Below, one piece after another: positions 5,260-60,786 of a stretch of 64,000 bases of DNA (positions are counted from its first letter, which is position 1; each line of letters starts with the position of its first letter). Below the pieces are notes generated by a model that was not told the DNA's origin, searched no databases, and saw nothing but the letters and a program-made list of their open reading frames with translations. The position numbers were made by a program, and so were the translations under genes. The stretch lies in the IMG/VR virus record IMGVR_UViG_3300032307_000369, positions 124,001 through 188,000 of that record; one strand, 5' to 3'.

Positions 5260-6009
5260 ATGACATCAAAAAATAATGAAACAGGCTTAGACGCAATGGC
5301 AGGCGATGGCGGATATAAAGAAGCATATCTAGCAGATGTAATTCGCTTTAAAATGAAACGTGATCAAAAACGTTTTTGGGCAGGTGACAATGTATCAGAT
5401 TATGTCACTGAAGAAATGAAACACAAGCTCATTGACGAAGCAACTGAAGCATTTGAACTAGTACTAGATCGATTGCTTATTGATCGAGAAAATGATCCTA
5501 ACTCGCATGGTACAGCCCGCCGACTGGCTAAAATGTACTTTAATGAAATAATGGCAGGAAGATATGAACCAGCACCAGATTGTACAGCATTTCCAAATGA
5601 CTCGGCGGACCGTTATGAGGGTATGTTGGTTGTTCGTAGTGAGCTTCGCAGTATGTGTAGCCATCATCACCAACCCGTTGCTGGCGTTGCTTATATTGGC
5701 ATTATTGCTGCCGAGAAACTCATTGGACTCAGCAAATACACACGCATCGCACAGTGGTGTGCAAGACGAGGTACTCTCCAGGAGGAACTTTGTAATGACA
5801 TTGCTAGGGAGATCCAAAAAGCAACAAACTCCCAAAACGTAGCAGTCTACATTCAAGCCACACATGGTTGCTGTGAGAATCGCGGCATTATGGCTCACAG
5901 TTCATTAACACAAACAACTGTACTAACTGGTACGTTTAAAACTGATCCAGGAGCGAAAAAAGAATTTTTTGATAACATTAAATTACAACAAGAGTTTGCT
6001 CCTAGATGA
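5260..6009 (+). CDS. folE: GTP cyclohydrolase I
   Basis: SMCSHH, IGLSKYTR, LQEE and HGCCENRG motifs. Confidence 0.95.
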   Translation: MTSKNNETGLDAMAGDGGYKEAYLADVIRFKMKRDQKRFWAGDNVSDYVTEEMKHKLIDEATEAFELVLDRLLIDRENDPNSHGTARRLAKMYFNEIMAGRYEPAPDCTAFPNDSADRYEGMLVVRSELRSMCSHHHQPVAGVAYIGIIAAEKLIGLSKYTRIAQWCARRGTLQEELCNDIAREIQKATNSQNVAVYIQATHGCCENRGIMAHSSLTQTTVLTGTFKTDPGAKKEFFDNIKLQQEFAPR

Positions 6010-6182
6010 ATTTAGACTTTGAAACACAAAACAAATACTATTTAGAATACAACATCAAAGCAGTAGAGTTAGGTGTAATGTGTAATCAGTATCCTGCGCT
6101 TCAAAAAGCGTGGGATCAATTTAAAACCGTTTACGAACTTTGTAAGGAAGAAAGCGATGAAGATTACCAGTCATTTCCTTAA
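6006..6182 (+). CDS. small hypothetical protein (58 aa, absent from ORF track)
   Basis: ATGA overlap with folE stop. Reads MNLDFETQNKYYLEYNIKAVELGVMCNQYPALQKAWDQFKTVYELCKEESDEDYQSFP. Confidence 0.65.
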   Translation: MNLDFETQNKYYLEYNIKAVELGVMCNQYPALQKAWDQFKTVYELCKEESDEDYQSFP

Positions 6183-13894: not shown

Positions 13895-15169
13895 ATGTCC
13901 TCAACTATTATGAAAGACGAAAACAATAAAAAAGTTTTCGAAAAGCGAGAACACAGCACAAAAGAGAAAAATGATGCTGTAGAAAAACTTATTACCGCTA
14001 GAGTTGGACTTTTACTACGACAACCATTTTTTGGTAATTTAGCAACACGCCTGCAACTAATTGATGCTAGCGATTGGTGTCCTACTGCCGCAACTGATGG
14101 TCGTAATTTTTATTACAATATTGACTTTATTAAATCACTGAGTGCAAAACAATGTGAATTCCTTTTTGGTCACGAAACACTACATAATGTGTTTGACCAC
14201 CTAACACGTCGTTTAGATAGAGATCCAAAGTTTTTTAACTATGCTTGTGACTTTGCTGTTAATCAAATTTTGATTGACGAACGCATTGGTGAGAAAATTG
14301 ATCAAGTAAAAATTTGTTATGACTCAAAATATCGAGGTAAGAGCTCTGAAGAAATTTATGACGACTTGATGAAGAATGTCAAATTTATGAGTGCTGAAGA
14401 ACTCCTTAAGCAGTTGGGCGAGTTACTTGACGAACATATGGATTGGGACGAAGACGGTGATCCTAGAGATGGCGAAAGTAATGGCGATAAGGATGGAAAA
14501 GGTGCTCCTAAATATAGCAAAGAAGAACTGAAAAAAATTCGAGATGAATTAAAAGAAGCAATGGTTGCCGCCGCACAGGCAGCTGGCGCTGGTCGAGTCC
14601 CAGTGGGTGTCCAGAGACTCCTTAAAGACCTTACAGAGCCAAAAATGGATTGGCGTCAATTGTTGCGTATGAATATTCAAAGTATTCTTCGTAGCAATTA
14701 TAGCTTTATGCGTCCAAGTCGAAAAGGATGGCATACTGGGGCGGTTTTGCCAGGTATGCTTAATGATGAAACTATTGATATCTGTATTGGTATTGATATG
14801 TCTGGTTCAATTGGTGATGCACAAGCCAAAGACTTCTTAAGTGAAGTTAAAGGAATTATGGACGAATATGTAGACTATAATATCCAACTTTGGTGCTTTG
14901 ATACAGAAGTATATAACTATGCCAAATTTAGTGCCGATAACGGCCAAGATTTAGACTCTTATGAAATTAAGGGCGGTGGCGGTACTGACTTTGACTGCAA
15001 TTATAACTTCATGAAAGATCAAGGAATTGAACCTAAGAAATTTGTAATGTTTACTGACGGATATCCCTGCGGAAGCTGGGGAGATGAAGACTACTGTGAT
15101 ACATTGTTCATTATTCACGGTTCGGAAGATATAAAATCTCCATTCGGTCAGTACGCACATTATAAATAA
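13895..15169 (+). CDS. metallopeptidase-like plus VWA domain protein (DUF2201-like)
   Basis: TAATDG, HETLH (HExxH), MIDAS DMSGS, GGGGTDF and FTDG motifs. Confidence 0.85.
   Translation: MSSTIMKDENNKKVFEKREHSTKEKNDAVEKLITARVGLLLRQPFFGNLATRLQLIDASDWCPTAATDGRNFYYNIDFIKSLSAKQCEFLFGHETLHNVFDHLTRRLDRDPKFFNYACDFAVNQILIDERIGEKIDQVKICYDSKYRGKSSEEIYDDLMKNVKFMSAEELLKQLGELLDEHMDWDEDGDPRDGESNGDKDGKGAPKYSKEELKKIRDELKEAMVAAAQAAGAGRVPVGVQRLLKDLTEPKMDWRQLLRMNIQSILRSNYSFMRPSRKGWHTGAVLPGMLNDETIDICIGIDMSGSIGDAQAKDFLSEVKGIMDEYVDYNIQLWCFDTEVYNYAKFSADNGQDLDSYEIKGGGGTDFDCNYNFMKDQGIEPKKFVMFTDGYPCGSWGDEDYCDTLFIIHGSEDIKSPFGQYAHYK
15161..15168 (+). promoter_or_regulatory. T4-type late promoter
   Basis: Exact TATAAATA upstream of ATG 15185. 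Confidence 0.7.
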
Positions 15170-52815: not shown

Positions 52816-53834
52816 CAAATCTTTTTAAGAAAGCAGCCTGTTTTACTGATATCCATTTTGGATTGAAGAGTAATAGTCGTACACACAATGAAGATTGTGC
52901 TGATTTTGTTGATTGGTTTATTGCTACTGCTAAAGAAAAAGGTGCAGAAACTTGCATTTTCTTAGGAGATTGGCATCATAATCGCTCAACAACTGACGTT
53001 AGTACAATGAATTATACAGTAAATGCGTTAGAAAAACTTAACAGCGCATTTGACACTGTACATATTATTACAGGTAATCATGACCAGTATTATAAGGACA
53101 AAAGAGATCTACATAGTTTAGAATATGGCAGATTATTTCCAAATATTAACATGGTCAATAATGCTTTTACAGAAGGAAATGTCACTATTCTTCCTTGGCT
53201 AGTAGGCGATGAATGGAAGACTATTGAAAAGATCAAGAGCAAATACATATTTGGTCACTTTGAACTTCCGCTGTTTTATATGAACGCCATGGTGCAAATG
53301 CCTGATCATGGCGAACTACAGCCCACTCACTTCAAACATCAAGATTATGTTTTTAGTGGTCACTTTCATAAGAGACAGAGCAAGGACAAAGTTCATTACA
53401 TTGGCAATGCCTTCCCACACAACTATGCTGACAGCTGGGATGACATGAGAGGAATGATGTTATTGGAATGGGACAAGCCGCCTGAATATATTGATTGGCC
53501 TGACTGTCCTAAATATCGTTCTGTAAAATTAAGTAGACTTCTTGATGAGAAAGATAGTATAATGAAGAGTAAGATGTACTTACGTGTTACTCTTGACATT
53601 GATATTACCTTTGAAGAGGCTAATTTCATTAAGGAAACCTTTATGAAAGAGTACGACATCCGAGAATTAAGTTTGATTACGGAGAAAGATAACTTGGAAG
53701 GACTAGTTGATGAAAATACTGATGTTAAGTTTGAAAGCGTAGATCAAATCGTAGCTGAACAAATCGTTGCCTTAGAGACTGGCACATATAATAACAATAC
53801 TCTATTAAGCATTTATAACGGACTTCATGTTTAA
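52812..53834 (+). CDS. recombination nuclease gp47 (Mre11/SbcD-like)
   Basis: DIHFG, GD, GNHD, GHFE and SGHFH phosphoesterase motifs. Confidence 0.92.
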   Translation: MTNLFKKAACFTDIHFGLKSNSRTHNEDCADFVDWFIATAKEKGAETCIFLGDWHHNRSTTDVSTMNYTVNALEKLNSAFDTVHIITGNHDQYYKDKRDLHSLEYGRLFPNINMVNNAFTEGNVTILPWLVGDEWKTIEKIKSKYIFGHFELPLFYMNAMVQMPDHGELQPTHFKHQDYVFSGHFHKRQSKDKVHYIGNAFPHNYADSWDDMRGMMLLEWDKPPEYIDWPDCPKYRSVKLSRLLDEKDSIMKSKMYLRVTLDIDITFEEANFIKETFMKEYDIRELSLITEKDNLEGLVDENTDVKFESVDQIVAEQIVALETGTYNNNTLLSIYNGLHV

Positions 53835-55620
53835 ACTAAAAACAATAACAGTAAAAAACTTTATGAGTGTGGGGAACCAGACTCAAGCCGTAGATTTTGA
53901 CAAGAATCATTTGACTTTGGTGTTGGGTGAAAACGTAGACTTAGGCGGAGATGACAGCGGTAGTCGTAATGGTACTGGTAAAACAACTATCATCAATGCT
54001 TTGTGCTATGCTTTATATGGCGAAGCCTTAACTAAGATTAAAAAAGAAAATTTAATTAACAAGACAAACGGTAAAAACCTAATTGTTACTTGTGAATTTG
54101 AAATTAATGGCAGACAGTATAAGATTGAAAGAGGAAGAAGACCAAACTTCTTAAAATTTTACGTTGATCATGTTCAAATAAAAGATGATTCACAGGGCGA
54201 TGACGATGCTCAAGGAGACAGTAGAGAAACACAAAAGGCTATTGAATCTTTATTAGGCATGAGTCAAACAATGTTCAAGCATTTGGTTGCATTGAACACA
54301 TATACCGAACCGTTTCTAAGCATGCGGGCAAATGATCAACGAGAAGTCATTGAACAGTTGCTTGGTATAACCTTGTTAAGTGAGAAAGCAGAATTACTTA
54401 AAGTTCAAGTAAAAGAAATTAAAGATCAAATTCAAGCAGAAACTTTTAAAATCGACAGCATAAGGACTAGTAATGAAAAAGTACAACAATCAATTGACAG
54501 CCTCTCTACTAAAAGTAAAGCCTGGGAATCCAAGCGAGAACAAGACTGCGCCGGTTACCAATCAGCGATTGCCGAGTTGCGCTCTGTTGATATCGACGGA
54601 GAAATTGAAAAACATGCTAGACTCAAGGTGTACAACGAACTAACAGCAAAAATTAGTTCATTAAACAAGCAGAAGGCCACTCTTGAAACTGCTATTGGTC
54701 AAGCTGAAAAGACCGTTAGCAAGTATACTAGAGAGTTAGAACAACTTGATAATAAAAAATGTCCTGCTTGCGAACAAGAACTGCATGATCATAAACACGA
54801 CGAGATGAAAGACACTGCTGTAAAGCATTTGTCTGATTCAATTGCGTATCAAGACAAGGTGTTAGCTGACCTTAATCTAGTGTTAAAAGAATTGTCTGAC
54901 ATTGGCGATATCAATGGAAGACCGTCTACTTACTATGACAGTGCTGAACAAGCCTACAATCATAGAAATAACGTTGAAAGTTTGAGTAAGGCTCTTGCTG
55001 ACAAGCAAGTAGAGTTGAATCCTTACACTGAACAAGTGGACGAATTACGAAAAACAGCATTACAAGAAATCAGTTGGGACACAGTTAATGAGTTGACTAG
55101 TGTAAAAGACCATATGGAGTTCTTACACAAACTATTAACCAGCAAAGATAGTTTTATACGTAAGAAAATTATTGATCAAAATCTTGCATATCTAAACAAA
55201 CGTCTAAGTTATTACTTGAATAAGGCAGGGTTGCCACATCAAGTCAAGTTCTTAAACGATTTGAACGTTGAGATTACACAGCTAGGCCAAGACTTAGACT
55301 TTGATAACTTGAGTCGCGGTGAACGCAACCGACTTATTTTAAGTTTAAGTTGGGCGTTCCGTGATGTTTGGGAAAGTTTATATCATCCTATTAACTTATT
55401 GTTCATTGATGAACTTATTGATGCAGGCATGGATAGTGCAGGTGTTGAAGGTGCATTGGCGATTCTTAAGAAGATGGCTAGAGAAAGAGATAAAAATATC
55501 TATTTGATCAGTCACAAGGATGAACTTGCGGGTCGAGTAAACAGTATTTTACGAGTGATTAAAGAAAACGGGTTTACCAGCTACTCAACTGACACAGATG
55601 TTATTGAAGCTCCGGTATAA
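53827..55620 (+). CDS. recombination ATPase gp46 (Rad50/SbcC-like)
   Basis: NGTGKT Walker A, CPAC zinc hook, LSRGE signature, LFIDE and ISH motifs. Confidence 0.93.
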   Translation: MFKLKTITVKNFMSVGNQTQAVDFDKNHLTLVLGENVDLGGDDSGSRNGTGKTTIINALCYALYGEALTKIKKENLINKTNGKNLIVTCEFEINGRQYKIERGRRPNFLKFYVDHVQIKDDSQGDDDAQGDSRETQKAIESLLGMSQTMFKHLVALNTYTEPFLSMRANDQREVIEQLLGITLLSEKAELLKVQVKEIKDQIQAETFKIDSIRTSNEKVQQSIDSLSTKSKAWESKREQDCAGYQSAIAELRSVDIDGEIEKHARLKVYNELTAKISSLNKQKATLETAIGQAEKTVSKYTRELEQLDNKKCPACEQELHDHKHDEMKDTAVKHLSDSIAYQDKVLADLNLVLKELSDIGDINGRPSTYYDSAEQAYNHRNNVESLSKALADKQVELNPYTEQVDELRKTALQEISWDTVNELTSVKDHMEFLHKLLTSKDSFIRKKIIDQNLAYLNKRLSYYLNKAGLPHQVKFLNDLNVEITQLGQDLDFDNLSRGERNRLILSLSWAFRDVWESLYHPINLLFIDELIDAGMDSAGVEGALAILKKMARERDKNIYLISHKDELAGRVNSILRVIKENGFTSYSTDTDVIEAPV

Positions 55621-56141: not shown

Positions 56142-56305
56142 TGTCAGACGTTGACGTTAAGCGATTACTTCAGCTTGAGCAAACTGTAAAAAGATTAGAG
56201 TTCCAAGTTGCACAACTAACTCAAAGAGTCAATTACTTTGAGCGTGAACGTCAACGAATTAAAACTGATATCAATCATATTGCAGGGATCCTTAGAAAGC
56301 AATGA
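56141..56305 (+). CDS. small coiled-coil protein (54 aa, absent from ORF track)
   Basis: TAATG and ATGA coupling at both ends. Reads MSDVDVKRLLQLEQTVKRLEFQVAQLTQRVNYFERERQRIKTDINHIAGILRKQ. Confidence 0.7.
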   Translation: MSDVDVKRLLQLEQTVKRLEFQVAQLTQRVNYFERERQRIKTDINHIAGILRKQ

Positions 56306-56748
56306 CATGGTTGTACGAAGGGATCACTGTTGAACAACTTCCAGAGGAGTGTGTTGGTTTTGTTTATATCATTACCAACACACTTACTGGTCGCAAATAT
56401 ATAGGCAAAAAACTAGCAAAATTTAGTCGAACTACTTACAGAGTACAAAAATTAAAAAACGGTACTAAGAAGAAAAAAAGAATTAAAAGTAAAGTAGATA
56501 GCGACTGGCAAGAATATTATGGCTCAAGTGACGAACTGAACAAAGACATAGAGACATTAGGCAAAGAAAACTTCAAACGTGAAATTCTCCACTATTGCAC
56601 GAGTAAGGCAGAAACTTCATATCTAGAAGCTAAAGAGCAATTTGAACGTAAGGTATTGGAAACTGATGAGTATTACAATGGCCACATTCAAGTTCGCGTC
56701 CACGGCTCACACATAATCAAAAAATTTAAGGCTCAATTAAACAGTTAA
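56302..56748 (+). CDS. single-domain GIY-YIG endonuclease
   Basis: GFVYIITN...RKYIGKK, YYGSS, F.REIL, E and YYN motifs. Confidence 0.88.
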   Translation: MTWLYEGITVEQLPEECVGFVYIITNTLTGRKYIGKKLAKFSRTTYRVQKLKNGTKKKKRIKSKVDSDWQEYYGSSDELNKDIETLGKENFKREILHYCTSKAETSYLEAKEQFERKVLETDEYYNGHIQVRVHGSHIIKKFKAQLNS

Positions 56749-57105: not shown

Positions 57106-57242
57106 TCGTAAACACTTCGTGTTTTATAATTGTTCTTATTATTAAATGAAATAAAACTGTGAGTTATGAAATAACGAACAAGTGAGCGTTAGCTCACTGA
57201 TAGAACATGCTACTGTTATCAACTTTACTACTTAAGGGTAAC

Positions 57243-57461
57243 TCAGATTAAAGGCATACCGGAATCTTTAGTCCATTCCATATTTTCTTTTACGATTTCA
57301 TTGATAGCTTGTTTTTGCTCGTAGGTCAACTGAAATGCCTCATCAGTGGTAAGGCCTCCACGCATGTACCATGCTAACCTGAATGTGTCTTTTTCGATGG
57401 CTTTTGCTTCTTTGTCGAGTCCTGCTGATATCTCAACAATTTCAGGCAGAGTTTTAGACAA
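57243..57461 (-). CDS. gp51-like small ORF; probable -1 frameshift extension of the upstream gene
   Basis: TTG start without an SD; lies in the -1 frame of the upstream gene across AAATTTTTTC. Confidence 0.65.
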   Translation of the reverse strand: MSKTLPEIVEISAGLDKEAKAIEKDTFRLAWYMRGGLTTDEAFQLTYEQKQAINEIVKENMEWTKDSGMPLI

Positions 57462-57466
57462 AAGCC

Positions 57467-58330
57467 TTAGACGAAAAAATTTGAGTAATCAAACTCAAAG
57501 GGCACTTCCATCTGTGCGGGAGCTCCTTGATCCACATACTGCTGTGGAGTCTGTATGGTCATGAAGCGTTTGTTGTTCCTATCGTTAAGTTCTCTAAATG
57601 CTTTAGCCACTACATCAAAAAACTCTTTATCACAATTTTCTAAAAACTCTTTAATTTGTAATGGGTCAGTGGTGTTGCCTTCTGTAGTGTCAATACGCTT
57701 AATTCCGTTTAACATCTGCATGAGAGTAGCATCTGCTAGACGTCCCATGGCGTTTGCTGCCATGTCAATACGCTGTTCTTCACTGAGATCTTCGTTTTGT
57801 ATAATGGCTTGTAGCACACGATTACTGTCAAAACTTAGTAGGCTATAGTCAGTTAATACCTTGTAGGTCACTGGCTCAATGTATATGGTCATATCGTTGT
57901 TGACTTTGACTTCTTCTTCCCAAAAGGTATTTTCCACAATTTGATCTAACAACGGTCTCAAGTCAATTTCAAAAGGTTCTTTTTCATTGGTGCCTGGAAT
58001 ACTCACATCCATGGTCATTTTTTCGCCGTATGTGGCAATGCGTATGGCAATTAATATTGCATCTAAATCTAAACTTGGACACTTCCAAGGATCTAAAATA
58101 TTTGGCACACAGCTTTTAATCACGTCCACAGTGGTACGTCCGTTGAACAATGCATCTGGAGTTCTGATCAACAGCTCGTCTTTAACGGTCAGTCCATATA
58201 CAGGGAACTCTCCGTTAGCTGGTATTTCTAAACTGCCTTCAGGCCAAAAGCGTCCTTGGCTGGGCAATTTAAGAAATAGTTTGGGTCTTCTCATAAAAGA
58301 AGACAGGGGATTTTTACGTGGACTTTCCAT
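57467..58330 (-). CDS. baseplate hub / tail assembly chaperone gp26-like
   Basis: LKLPSQG...TVKDEL...DLDAILIAIRIATYGE...IDL...FF end. Confidence 0.8.
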   Translation of the reverse strand: MESPRKNPLSSFMRRPKLFLKLPSQGRFWPEGSLEIPANGEFPVYGLTVKDELLIRTPDALFNGRTTVDVIKSCVPNILDPWKCPSLDLDAILIAIRIATYGEKMTMDVSIPGTNEKEPFEIDLRPLLDQIVENTFWEEEVKVNNDMTIYIEPVTYKVLTDYSLLSFDSNRVLQAIIQNEDLSEEQRIDMAANAMGRLADATLMQMLNGIKRIDTTEGNTTDPLQIKEFLENCDKEFFDVVAKAFRELNDRNNKRFMTIQTPQQYVDQGAPAQMEVPFEFDYSNFFV

Positions 58331-58341
58331 TTTTTAACTCC

Positions 58342-58368
58342 GATAAATAATATACTGCATTATTTATA
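58342..58368. promoter_or_regulatory. face-to-face late promoters
   Basis: GATAAATA (+, 58342-58349) and TATAAATA (-, 58361-58368). Confidence 0.65.
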
Positions 58369-58392: not shown

Positions 58393-60786
58393 ATGTCTGA
58401 AGTAACTGGTACACTGGGAAGCGAAAGTATTAGACTGCGTGGTATGGCGCTGGAAGAAACACAGCGTGAACTATTGCTGACCTTGCAAAAAATAGCTAAA
58501 ATAGACTCTAAGAGTGTGGGTGGATTCTTTGGAGCAATTGGTGATGCTTCCAAAGATACTAGCGGAAAACTAGGAGTGCTTGGCGGAGCCGTGTCTAAAT
58601 TTAGCGGTGTTGTTGGAGTTATTACTGGTGCTGGCAAAGTATTAGGCAGTATTTTAACTGATCTAACTGGTGGATTTGAAGGAGTGTCGCAACAAATTAG
58701 AACTTCTAGTGGAGCCATAAGAGATCAAACTAACAACTTGCGCATATTAGGATCACGCACTACTGGAGCTACTAGTGCCATTTACAAGTTTGCCGCTGAA
58801 GGGATTGGTCAATTAGAAGAACAATTTGATGTTTACAAGCGACTGAGCAATATTGGCGGGGTAGTTGCAGGGGACTTTGACAATCTAAGAATTAATGCTA
58901 GTACACTAGGCGTTACTATGCAAGAGTACGCTGGATTAATGGAAGAAAACTTCCTTAATTTACGATTAAACGGCACTAGTGCAAGAAATGGCATGAGAGA
59001 TTTGCGTCTATCTGCACAAAGTATGCGTGATAGCGGTGAAGCATTCAACGATCAATTCATGCGATTAGGCATTGGAGCAAATGATTACGGAAAAGTTATA
59101 TTACAAAATTCCATGTTGTTTGGTGGTTTGACTAAAGCACAACAGACTTATGGTTCCATGTTTAATGACAAGATGTTGCAGACTACAAAAACTGTAACTC
59201 AATTGGGAGATGCATTTGGCTTCAACAGAGAAGTCATTATGAAAGCTGCCAACGAAGCATTGCAAGATGCTCGCAATAGAACAATCTTTAATAACATTAG
59301 AGAAGAAGGTAAGCAACAGATGCTATCTCTAATGACTGGCATGTTTGGCGGAGATGCACAAAAAGGCATGCGAGCAACCATTGCGGCTTACACAGGGCGT
59401 TTTGATGAACAAAGTGCCGTGCTTGCTGGCATGGCTCCTGACCTAATGCAAAAAATGAAAGCTCTATCGGCAGCAGTGGCCAAAGGTGTGCCAGTAATGG
59501 ATGCTATCAAACAAGTTGATTTAGGTCCTACGTTCGCAAGGATAGAAAGTCAGTCAAATGATTTAGCACAAGGATTTTTAGATAATGCTGGCGCTCCTGG
59601 TATTGCTGCCAATGCATTGTTAAACTTACAGCAAATGTTTGGCGATATGCCAGCTGTTCAGAAAAGATTAGAAGATTCCACAAACAGTTTGACAAGTCAG
59701 CAAGGTAAGAATTTAGATGCATTAGGCACATTTCAAAGAGAAAATATTAGAATAGCTGTTAGCATGGGTGAAGCAAATAAAGTATTAAACACATTTGGTT
59801 TAGGAGTTGCTCTCAGTTCACAAATTATTACTTCAGCTGTTGGAGAAATTGCAAAAGGTATAGGAAAATTAGGGGATGACGCATTTTTAAAAAGTAATAT
59901 AGATGCTGTTACAAGATTAAAAGAGTTGAATATATCAGCAACAAAAGAAATACGCGAGTTTAGTAAAACAAGCAGTGAAGGAATTGACAAGATAATTGAT
60001 CGTGCTGTGAATAAGTTTAACGAATTGACAGGCGGTACTAATACACAAAGTGGTAATCAAAATCAATCAAGAAATGGATCCCAAGCACAAGGCTCTCCAC
60101 AAACGCCAAATAATGGCAACGCACAACAAGCATCTGCACAGTCTGCACCAGCGGCAAACGCAGGAGCTCCTGCAAGACAAGCATTAGGACCTGCGGCTAA
60201 TGCATTGTTAGGAGCTATTGAAGGTGTTCAAAGAACCAATAGCACTCTTCCAGATACTGAAAAACTTCGTGGTGGTGTAAAATTTGATTACAAGATTAAT
60301 AAAGGTCAAGAAGTATCTAGAGAAGTTGACCAGATTAAAAACTTAATGGCACAGGCTAACTTAAAAGAAGGAACTGATTTTAAGTTGTCTAGTCAGTATG
60401 ATGGTACTACTGGTAAAGTTGGAGTTGAATTTATGTCAACTGAGGCCGCAGATAAATTTGCACAAGTGGCTTCAAAAATTAAAAATCCACCACCGGCACC
60501 TCCTGCACCAACCGCATCCGCTCCAAGACCAGAAACGAGTGCGGTGGTACAACCTAGAGCTGCCACTCCTACTACCAATACTGCTGAAAGACCTGTGCAA
60601 GTATCCACTTCTGCTCAGGAAGCATCACAAAATCAGTTAAATAATAGCAGAACACAAGTGGCTACATTAGGAACAGACTCTGACATGCTTGCTAGATTAA
60701 TTCAGAACGATAATGAAAATACCACAAGAGTTATTGACAAATTAGAATCGTTGACTCAATCTGTTATGAGATCAATACCAGCGTAA
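58393..60786 (+). CDS. tape-measure-like protein (gp29-like)
   Basis: Long helical Ala/Gly/Gln-rich protein adjacent to the gp26-like chaperone. Confidence 0.6.
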   Translation: MSEVTGTLGSESIRLRGMALEETQRELLLTLQKIAKIDSKSVGGFFGAIGDASKDTSGKLGVLGGAVSKFSGVVGVITGAGKVLGSILTDLTGGFEGVSQQIRTSSGAIRDQTNNLRILGSRTTGATSAIYKFAAEGIGQLEEQFDVYKRLSNIGGVVAGDFDNLRINASTLGVTMQEYAGLMEENFLNLRLNGTSARNGMRDLRLSAQSMRDSGEAFNDQFMRLGIGANDYGKVILQNSMLFGGLTKAQQTYGSMFNDKMLQTTKTVTQLGDAFGFNREVIMKAANEALQDARNRTIFNNIREEGKQQMLSLMTGMFGGDAQKGMRATIAAYTGRFDEQSAVLAGMAPDLMQKMKALSAAVAKGVPVMDAIKQVDLGPTFARIESQSNDLAQGFLDNAGAPGIAANALLNLQQMFGDMPAVQKRLEDSTNSLTSQQGKNLDALGTFQRENIRIAVSMGEANKVLNTFGLGVALSSQIITSAVGEIAKGIGKLGDDAFLKSNIDAVTRLKELNISATKEIREFSKTSSEGIDKIIDRAVNKFNELTGGTNTQSGNQNQSRNGSQAQGSPQTPNNGNAQQASAQSAPAANAGAPARQALGPAANALLGAIEGVQRTNSTLPDTEKLRGGVKFDYKINKGQEVSREVDQIKNLMAQANLKEGTDFKLSSQYDGTTGKVGVEFMSTEAADKFAQVASKIKNPPPAPPAPTASAPRPETSAVVQPRAATPTTNTAERPVQVSTSAQEASQNQLNNSRTQVATLGTDSDMLARLIQNDNENTTRVIDKLESLTQSVMRSIPA

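Follow-up and report, generated by a model that had tools for sequence, protein, structure and literature searches.

A freshwater jumbo phage very probably makes a short and a long form of its T4-type baseplate-hub assembly protein from a single gene by a programmed -1 ribosomal frameshift, although, in the absence of protein, ribosome-profiling or RNA evidence, the slippage itself is inferred. By contrast, phage T4, the textbook exception to tail-chaperone frameshifting, encodes the same two forms as separate paralogous genes, namely, 26 and 51. The gene in question was found in a window of 64,000 nucleotides (positions 124,001 to 188,000 of IMG/VR virus record IMGVR_UViG_3300032307_000369), this being the whole stretch of DNA analyzed. 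No such frameshift is annotated in the 13 GenBank/RefSeq records read, and no paper linking gp26/gp51 or the jumbo-phage "baseplate hub" gene to frameshifting was found in the literature that could be searched, which did not cover subscription-journal papers. The features considered in what follows are these:

57467..58330, minus strand: ORF1, the short form (287 aa plus stop), a T4_baseplate (gp26/gp51 family) hub-assembly protein and the zero-frame product.
57473..57479, minus strand: slippery heptamer T_TTT_TTC in the zero-frame register (AAT TTT TTC).
57467..57472, minus strand: 6-nt spacer GTCTAA, which includes the zero-frame stop TAA.
57458..57466, minus strand: 5' arm (GGCTTTTGT) of the predicted frameshift-stimulating stem, containing the TTG "start" of ORF2.
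57399..57407, minus strand: 3' arm (GCAAAAGCC) of the stem, closing a loop of about 50 nt that holds an inner hairpin.
57246..57473, minus strand: -1 frame extension of 76 codons (RLRLLSK...GMPLI), a helical, apparently Gp51_C-like tail that with ORF1 residues 1-286 gives the 362-aa long form.
57243..57461, minus strand: ORF2 as a mechanical ORF call (TTG start, 72 aa plus stop), probably not an independent gene.
57181..57198, minus strand: terminator-like hairpin after the stop of the extension, seen in a consensus scan only.
58338..58368, minus strand: upstream signals of ORF1, namely TATAAATA (58368..58361, the T4 late-promoter consensus) and GGAG (58341..58338, 7 nt before the ATG), both based on sequence match only.
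58393..60786, plus strand: divergently transcribed 797-aa protein, a probable tail tape measure and the presumed client of the chaperone.

Examination of the sequence confirmed that ORF1 ends AAT TTT TTC GTC TAA and that ORF2 is offset from it by 869 nt, placing ORF2 in the -1 frame. A -1 slip on T_TTT_TTC would lead to reading on from CGT CTA AGG, giving the junction ...SNFF-RLRLLSK. An earlier note, which had proposed a programmed -1 frameshift on this T run fusing ORF1 to the downstream ORF, is supported in its central claim. Three corrections are, however, needed. First, the note had listed A-AAT-TTT as a second, overlapping heptamer, yet this is not an X_XXY_YYZ motif and the codons before the NNT codon vary among relatives, such that only T_TTT_TTC counts. 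Second, the note had described the two ORFs as gp26-like and gp51-like, yet ORF2 is not gp51-like as a whole gene. Rather, T4 gp26 and gp51 are paralogues that share the PF12322 domain, with ORF1 alone corresponding to gp26 and ORF1 plus the extension corresponding to gp51, while ORF2 resembles only the C-terminal tail of gp51. Third, the label of G/GT-type tail chaperone holds as a functional analogy only.

To determine whether the putative slip site is conserved, related loci with a complete ORF1 were compared. This revealed the heptamer in the same register in all 95 relatives that could be evaluated, covering 89 distinct proteins in 21 clusters at about 50% identity and including Atu_ph07, Phosso, PA5oct, GAP32, CBB, XaC1, EJP2 and BF17. 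Of the 89 distinct proteins, 88 have TTTTTTC and one, that of RsoM2USA, has TTTTTTT. The preceding codon is always NNT, although the amino acid encoded varies (N, D, S, H, Y, V, T). From the codon usage of the genes themselves, NNT-TTT-TTC has a probability of about 0.105 per lineage, such that the pattern is far beyond chance. Part of the conservation of the heptamer is nonetheless forced by dual coding (F-F in frame 0 and Arg CGN in frame -1). In relatives, the zero-frame stop lies 1, 2, 3, 4, 6 or 11 codons after the heptamer and the relative frame is -1 in every case. The -1 frame is open for 75-76 codons in 77 of 77 environmental loci and for 69-82 codons in 13 other loci (11 named phages), whereas the +1 frame closes after a median of 9 codons.

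The possibility that RNA structure stimulates slippage was next considered. When all lineages were considered together, RNAalifold gave no consensus structure, as the 3' arm sits at different distances (+36, +54, +66 and +73-76) in different lineages. The stem became clear only when each class was considered separately. A stem of about 8-16 bp was seen usually to start 3-9 nt after the heptamer. The uninterrupted stem has a median length of 10 bp, as compared to 6 bp at 395 control positions chosen at random within the genes (p = 3e-24), with a mean folding energy of -19.7 against -11.6 kcal/mol. For the sequence studied here, a 6-nt spacer is followed by a 9-bp basal stem (window fold -20 kcal/mol, z = -2.2). 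Covariation was assessed on one alignment, where 86% of cells were paired, against at most 59% when slid, with changes on both sides in 5 pairs and 25 cells and with 0 of 500 shuffles scoring as high. In the group comprising GAP32, CBB, EJP2 and BF17, however, the downstream structure is weak. No known RNA family was found at the site in Rfam.

To address whether the fused polypeptide exists in nature, single-ORF proteins were sought. About 20 of the top 150 profile hits are proteins of 319-351 aa with the extension at their C-terminus. In one of these, P0116, residues 1-270 align to ORF1 residues 13-286 (E 6e-32) and residues 271-346 align to residues 1-76 of the extension without a gap and with 41% identity (E 1e-18), such that the two segments meet at exactly the predicted junction. 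When used as a tblastn query, P0116 hit Atu_ph07 as two pieces in two frames that cover 97% of it. Such fusions show only that the fused polypeptide is a viable protein. As an internal control, six natural long-form genes were examined and found to have a different junction (one Phe, no T run), with no heptamer and only background stems (5-6 bp; -0.6 to -8.5 kcal/mol). In 6 of 6 contexts read, a separate short PF12322 gene lies directly upstream, keeping a relic T_TTT_TTC in 2 of 6 cases. These environmental phages also make a short and a long form, albeit from tandem genes.

ORF1 was assigned to Pfam PF12322 (T4_baseplate; E 4.8e-7; 30.1 bits against a cut-off of 24.5) and to phrog_150 ("baseplate hub"). 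Relatives score 74-98 bits, with the end of the profile coinciding with the end of ORF1. An AlphaFold model of ORF1 (pLDDT 93.6) matches T4-like baseplate hub assembly proteins in BFVD. Single-sequence comparisons of the ORF1 profile with T4 gp26 and gp51 gave only weak or partial matches, such that homology rests on the Pfam hits. T4 has two PF12322 genes, 26 and 51, which are divergently transcribed and lack a slippery site, whereas Atu_ph07, GAP32, PA5oct, Phosso and the present genome have one each. T4 gp26 ends ...EFFELL, at the position of the slip site and with the same F-F motif, but encoded by the non-slippery TTC TTT. The protein is longer here (287 against 208 aa) and, in the clade that includes the window, the four zinc-ribbon cysteines are lost.

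In T4 gp51, the PF12322 profile ends at residue 201 of 249, the remainder being a C-terminal tail (Pfam PF28602, Gp51_C). A profile of the fused proteins aligns to the gp51 family through the junction to its C-terminus (90%, E 1.7e-6). Comparison of the extension with the gp51 tail gave P values of about 4-7e-5, with controls at 0.02-0.2, while Gp51_C is the only Pfam family among the ESM Atlas feature hits for the extension (score 0.91; 176 shared features). This evidence is indirect and the link is moderate rather than conclusive, given that hhalign probability is 62-71% on the tails alone. Moreover, comparison of the natural long forms with the gp51 family gave a probability of only 49%, although that alignment is collinear end to end at a low mact setting, while a RaK2-like extension profile matched the gp51 tail in the same register but weakly (P = 0.009). 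None of the top 120 extension relatives (of 6964 found) carries a precomputed Pfam hit.

Taken together, these findings are best explained by one late gene giving rise to two proteins, a reading held here with high confidence. Most ribosomes would translate ORF1 to its stop, generating the 287-aa gp26-type short form. A fraction would pause with tRNA-Phe on TTT (P site) and TTC (A site) of the heptamer, held by the stem that begins 6 nt downstream, and slip back one base, with both tRNAs re-pairing to TTT and translation continuing in the -1 frame for 76 codons to yield the 362-aa long form. The two forms correspond to T4 gp26 and gp51, listed in the literature as hub-assembly chaperones, and probably act on the neighboring tape-measure-like protein during hub and tail-tube initiation, as do lambda gpG and gpGT. 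This chaperone role and the tape-measure client rest on T4 literature and synteny, prediction of a complex of ORF1 with residues 1-700 of the tape-measure-like protein having given no answer either way. Syntenic homologues of the 797-aa neighbor are virion structural proteins in PA5oct (ESI-MS/MS note), GAP32, CBB and XaC1. Its Atlas feature hits include the TMP_3, PhageMin_Tail and TMP_2 families at 0.91-0.93, although this is a lead only; BLASTP against T4 gp29 is not significant.

Of the alternatives, that in which no frameshift occurs and ORF2 is a separate small gene, translated by termination-reinitiation or from TTG/GTG/ATG codons, with the T run merely encoding a conserved Phe-Phe, survives best, yet is unlikely. 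In its favor, 12 of 77 loci (about 16%) have an ATG at codon 1 of the extension that overlaps the stop (ATGA) and 13 of 77 (about 17%) have a TTG at codon 4, such that separate initiation is possible in some lineages. Separate small CDSs are annotated in GenBank for Phosso, Atu_ph07, GAP32, CBB, XaC1, EJP2, BF17 and the Vibrio phage, and a conserved AAGG/GAGG that follows the heptamer could be read as a weak Shine-Dalgarno sequence. In about two thirds of loci, however, the first start codon lies 6 to 36 codons into the extension, such that there is no conserved initiation site, even though the residues before it (R-x-R/K-L/I-L...E-I) are conserved. The TTG of the window (57461..57459) is buried in the 5' arm of the predicted stem, only 3 nt after AAGG. 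The third base of the codon before F-F is T in 89 of 89 distinct genes, and the F-F pair is TTT TTC in 88 of 89, as compared to 4 of 32 for F-F dipeptides elsewhere in the same genes. Furthermore, natural proteins carry the extension fused in frame at exactly this junction in genes that lose both the heptamer and the stem. Gene callers give ORF2 lengths ranging from 40 to 98 aa, and PA5oct has no annotated ORF2. Against a frameshift, the PA5oct paper does not mention one.

Transcriptional slippage, in which RNA polymerase adds one U on the T6 run, is less likely still. A homopolymeric run is present and invariant, and such slippage is used by some bacterial and phage genes (PMC5009743). Nevertheless, six T is short for productive polymerase slippage, which would usually seem to need about 8-9 or more, and a conserved, covarying stem 3-9 nt downstream is the signature of a ribosomal stimulator. 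No DNA-level length variation of the run appears in 95 assemblies or in the contigs of four metagenome runs, although the latter add little. Finally, an assembly error or pseudogene derived from a continuous ORF with a 7-T run can be all but dismissed, despite homopolymers being error-prone and continuous long-form genes existing in nature, as the same 6-T run and frame relation occur in 95 independent loci, including finished genomes from many laboratories and platforms, across relatives down to 25% protein identity, while the continuous genes have a different junction and a separate short paralogue.

As in the lambda gpG/gpGT and P2 E/E+E' tail assembly chaperones (PMC5009743), two nested products would here arise from one start, with the longer generated by a -1 slip on a heptamer a few codons before the stop of the shorter, from a gene next to a tape-measure(-like) gene. 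In addition, the T4 counterparts are assembly chaperones and gp51 is absent from the particle (PMC3004832), although the CBB homologue is annotated as a "structural protein." The system is analogous but not homologous to that of lambda, in that no sequence or fold relation was found: there is no Phage_TAC Pfam hit or corresponding PHROG hit, and confident models (pLDDT 93.6 and 90) have no PDB analogue, with Foldseek against the PDB, VIA wide and the ESM Atlas finding no solved analogue. The protein is also much larger (287/362 aa), the heptamer is U_UUU_UUC with a long-range stem as stimulator, and the gene is transcribed divergently from the tape-measure-like gene rather than lying between the tube and tape-measure genes. 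Downstream lie small ORFs and a gp46-like nuclease, not a tube gene, and the synteny is the same in GAP32 and PA5oct. The E. coli dnaX tau/gamma frameshift likewise involves a heptamer, a short spacer and a downstream stem-loop that gives two forms of one protein in a set ratio, yet there the shifted product is the shorter one and an upstream Shine-Dalgarno-like stimulator is used. No conserved upstream element of this type was seen here.

It is about as likely as not that the T4_baseplate family is the T4-lineage counterpart of the G/GT tail-assembly chaperone pair. In that case, T4 would not be a true exception to the conserved tail-chaperone frameshift rule. Its relatives would use a -1 frameshift in this family, while T4 and, independently, a clade of environmental phages would have replaced the frameshift with a pair of short and long paralogous genes. 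This would be a natural experiment showing that a frameshift and a gene duplication are interchangeable ways of making a short and a long form of the same assembly protein. The finding gives a concrete, testable model in which gp26 and gp51 are the short and long forms of one chaperone, with jumbo relatives such as RaK2/GAP32-like phages, PA5oct and Atu_ph07 making both from a single gene by -1 frameshifting. In the 13 jumbo-phage records read, and in thousands of metagenomic gene calls, the 3' part is annotated as an arbitrary small hypothetical ORF or not at all, and those entries should be a joined CDS. The three natural states, namely, frameshift, tandem paralogues and divergent paralogues, offer a clean system for asking why phages keep a set short-to-long ratio.

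The window belongs to a 245.5-kb IMG/VR virus record, with near-identical DNA occurring in freshwater and subsurface metagenomes. Examination of the region of interest revealed the following features.

58330..57467, minus strand: ORF1, 287 aa, a member of Pfam PF12322 T4_baseplate and of phrog_150 'baseplate hub', ending AAT TTT TTC GTC TAA
57461..57243, minus strand: ORF2, 72 aa, with a TTG start, lying in the -1 frame and followed by a terminator-like hairpin
58361-58368, minus strand: TATAAATA, the T4 late-promoter consensus, 31 nt upstream of the ORF1 start, with GGAG also preceding ORF1
57466..57458 pairing with 57407..57399, minus strand: a predicted 9-bp stem beginning 6 nt after the heptamer T_TTT_TTC
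58393-60786, plus strand: a divergently transcribed 797-aa protein, followed by a T4-type portal
53827-55620 and 56302-56748, plus strand: nearby genes, namely a gp46/SbcC-like recombination nuclease subunit (phrog_77, E 6e-112) and several small ORFs

The late-promoter motif occurs only twice in the 64-kb window, the second time at 15161-15168 on the plus strand, against about 7 occurrences expected by chance, and so is depleted elsewhere. The 797-aa divergent neighbor contains a long low-complexity Q/N/G/S/P/A-rich stretch (about residues 545-600 and 695-740) and no Pfam family, while its syntenic homologues are virion structural proteins. Its length would fit a tape measure for a tail of about 120-135 nm; however, only language-model features place it near tape-measure families, such that this assignment is a lead only. 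The synteny of nuclease, small ORFs, hub chaperone, tape-measure-like gene and portal is shared with GAP32 and Atu_ph07.

To determine whether the putative frameshift signal is conserved, related loci were next considered. The closest isolated relatives are jumbo myoviruses at 25-32% protein identity, namely, Phosso, Atu_ph07, PA5oct, GAP32, CBB, XaC1, EJP2, BF17, RsoM2USA and a Vibrio phage, to which two scans of IMG/VR added 92 environmental loci. All 95 loci with a complete ORF1 contain the heptamer in the same register. Of the 89 distinct proteins, 88 present T_TTT_TTC and one (RsoM2USA) presents T_TTT_TTT. The preceding codon is AAT, GAT, AGT, CAT, TAT, GTT, TCT or ACT, meaning that although the amino acid varies, the third base is always T. 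By contrast, Phe-Phe elsewhere in these genes is encoded by TTT TTC in only 4 of 32 cases. Based on the codon usage of the genes themselves, the chance of NNT-TTT-TTC is about 0.105 per lineage, with the sequences falling into 21 clusters at about 50% identity. The zero-frame stop lies 1, 2, 3, 4, 6 or 11 codons after the heptamer, while the -1 frame is open for 69-82 codons in every complete locus and the +1 frame closes after a median of 9 codons.

No conserved start codon was seen in the -1 frame, where the first ATG, GTG or TTG lies anywhere from codon 1 to codon 36 of the extension. Even so, the residues immediately following the slip site (R-x-R/K-L/I-L ... E-I) are conserved. PA5oct has no annotated ORF2, and gene callers assign ORF2 relatives lengths ranging from 40 to 98 aa.

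The RNA downstream of the heptamer was next addressed. In the window, the 9-bp stem closes a loop of about 50 nt that holds an inner hairpin (-20 kcal/mol, z = -2.2), with the TTG 'start' of ORF2 lying in the 5' arm. Across 79 distinct sequences, the longest uninterrupted stem with a 5' arm starting 3-9 nt after the heptamer has a median length of 10 bp, as compared to a median of 6 bp at 395 random in-gene positions (p = 3e-24), while mean folding energy is -19.7 against -11.6 kcal/mol. The structure is, however, weak in the group comprising GAP32, CBB, EJP2 and BF17, and no Rfam family matches. Whereas the 5' arm is fixed in position, the 3' arm lies at about +36, +54, +66 or +73-76 in different lineages, which is why prediction of a single consensus fold failed. 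In the long-range class (an alignment of 22 sequences), 86% of cells pair, against at most 59% when the partner is slid. Moreover, five pairs and 25 cells carry changes on both sides, and no shuffle of 500 reaches the observed covariation.

In seeking natural versions of the predicted fusion, a profile of the extension was used to search 1.84 billion representatives, revealing 494 proteins. Most are small ORF2 calls, yet about 20 of the top 150 are proteins of 319-351 aa with the extension at the very C-terminus. In one such protein, termed P0116, residues 1-270 align to ORF1 residues 13-286 (E 6e-32) and residues 271-346 align without a gap to extension residues 1-76 (41% identity, E 1e-18). 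This single-ORF protein is therefore collinear with ORF1 plus the extension exactly at the predicted junction. When used as a tblastn query, P0116 hits Atu_ph07 as two pieces in two frames that cover 97% of it.

Six long-form genes were read in context, and each is directly preceded by a separate short PF12322 gene of 276-312 aa. The junctions of the long-form genes contain no slippery heptamer and only background stems (5-6 bp, -0.6 to -8.5 kcal/mol). The short genes end at the same F-F or F-x motif and, in 2 of 6 cases (positions 1689-1704 of locus L107 and about 1274-1295 of locus L108), still carry T_TTT_TTC before their stop, although the -1 frame closes after one codon. This looks like a relic of an ancestral frameshift site. 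As such, where no frameshift is needed, the RNA signals are gone but the protein motif stays.

The relation of these proteins to those of T4 was then considered. T4 gp26 (208 aa) and gp51 (249 aa) both match the whole PF12322 profile and so are paralogues. T4 has two PF12322 genes, while Atu_ph07, GAP32, PA5oct, Phosso and the genome considered here have one each. gp26 ends ...EFFELL at the position of the slip site, encoded by the non-slippery TTC TTT, while gp51 continues for 48 residues, a region that newer Pfam releases call PF28602 Gp51_C. The T4 record also annotates a second product of gene 26, called 26' (positions 5803-6090, minus strand, of locus L016), corresponding to the C-terminal 95 aa and generated from an internal start, such that T4 gene 26 also gives nested products, albeit by a different route. 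A profile of the fused jumbo-phage proteins aligns to the gp51 family through the junction to the C-terminus (90%, E 1.7e-6), and the extension alone against the last 62 residues of gp51 gives P = 4e-5 to 7e-5, with reversed and off-target controls at 0.02-0.2. Gp51_C is, moreover, the only Pfam family among 100 Atlas feature hits for the extension (score 0.91, 176 shared features). The link between the extension and the gp51 tail is regarded as probable, although not proven. In an alternative hhalign alignment against the gp51 family, the second half of the T4_baseplate domain (about residues 125-321 of P0116, with the second CxxC ribbon) aligns to the first half of gp51 (9-162) at E 4.5e-4, suggesting that the domain is itself an internal duplication.

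In a maximum-likelihood tree, T4 gp26 groups with the T4-like gp51 N-domains (99/98), apart from all jumbo-phage forms. While the tree contains a single, long-branched gp26 and its root is arbitrary, this suggests that the T4 duplication and the tandem duplication were independent. It was also noted that ORF1 (57470-58330, minus strand) and its close clade have lost all four cysteines of the two CxxC zinc-ribbon motifs that are nearly invariant in Atu_ph07, PA5oct, GAP32, the natural long forms and T4 gp26/gp51. At those positions, the window instead presents SIPGTNEKE and QQYVDQGAPAQ. The short genes of the tandem clade share the Cys-less 'GAP' version.

The predicted structure of ORF1 is confident (pLDDT 93.6) and matches T4-like baseplate hub assembly proteins across many myoviruses in BFVD, yet matches nothing solved. 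In the model of a natural long form (pLDDT 90), the extension forms four helices, and this model similarly has no PDB analogue. There is thus no evidence of homology to lambda-type chaperones. In terms of function, gp26 and gp51 are described in the literature as hub-assembly chaperones, with gp51 being absent from the particle (PMC3004832), while G-T frameshifting is stated to be conserved among long-tailed phages 'except T4' (PMC5009743). It is inferred, although unproven, that slippage occurs and that the two forms considered here act like gpG and gpGT on the neighboring tape-measure-like protein. In CBB, the homologue of ORF1 (positions 695-1552 of locus L110) is annotated as 'structural protein'. 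If that annotation rests on virion mass spectrometry, then the short form may be present in particles, unlike a pure chaperone.

Alternative explanations were also considered. Separate initiation of ORF2 is possible in the minority of lineages with an ATGA overlap or a TTG at codon 4, but explains neither the invariant NNT T-run, nor the covarying stem, nor the fusions. Transcriptional slippage on six T is unlikely and would not need the stem. Assembly error is excluded by 95 independent loci.

None of the 13 GenBank/RefSeq records read annotates a joined CDS, nor did seven literature searches find any description, within the limits of open-access publications. The mechanism itself is classical. 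What is new is the gene family, the phage group, and the link to T4 genes 26 and 51.
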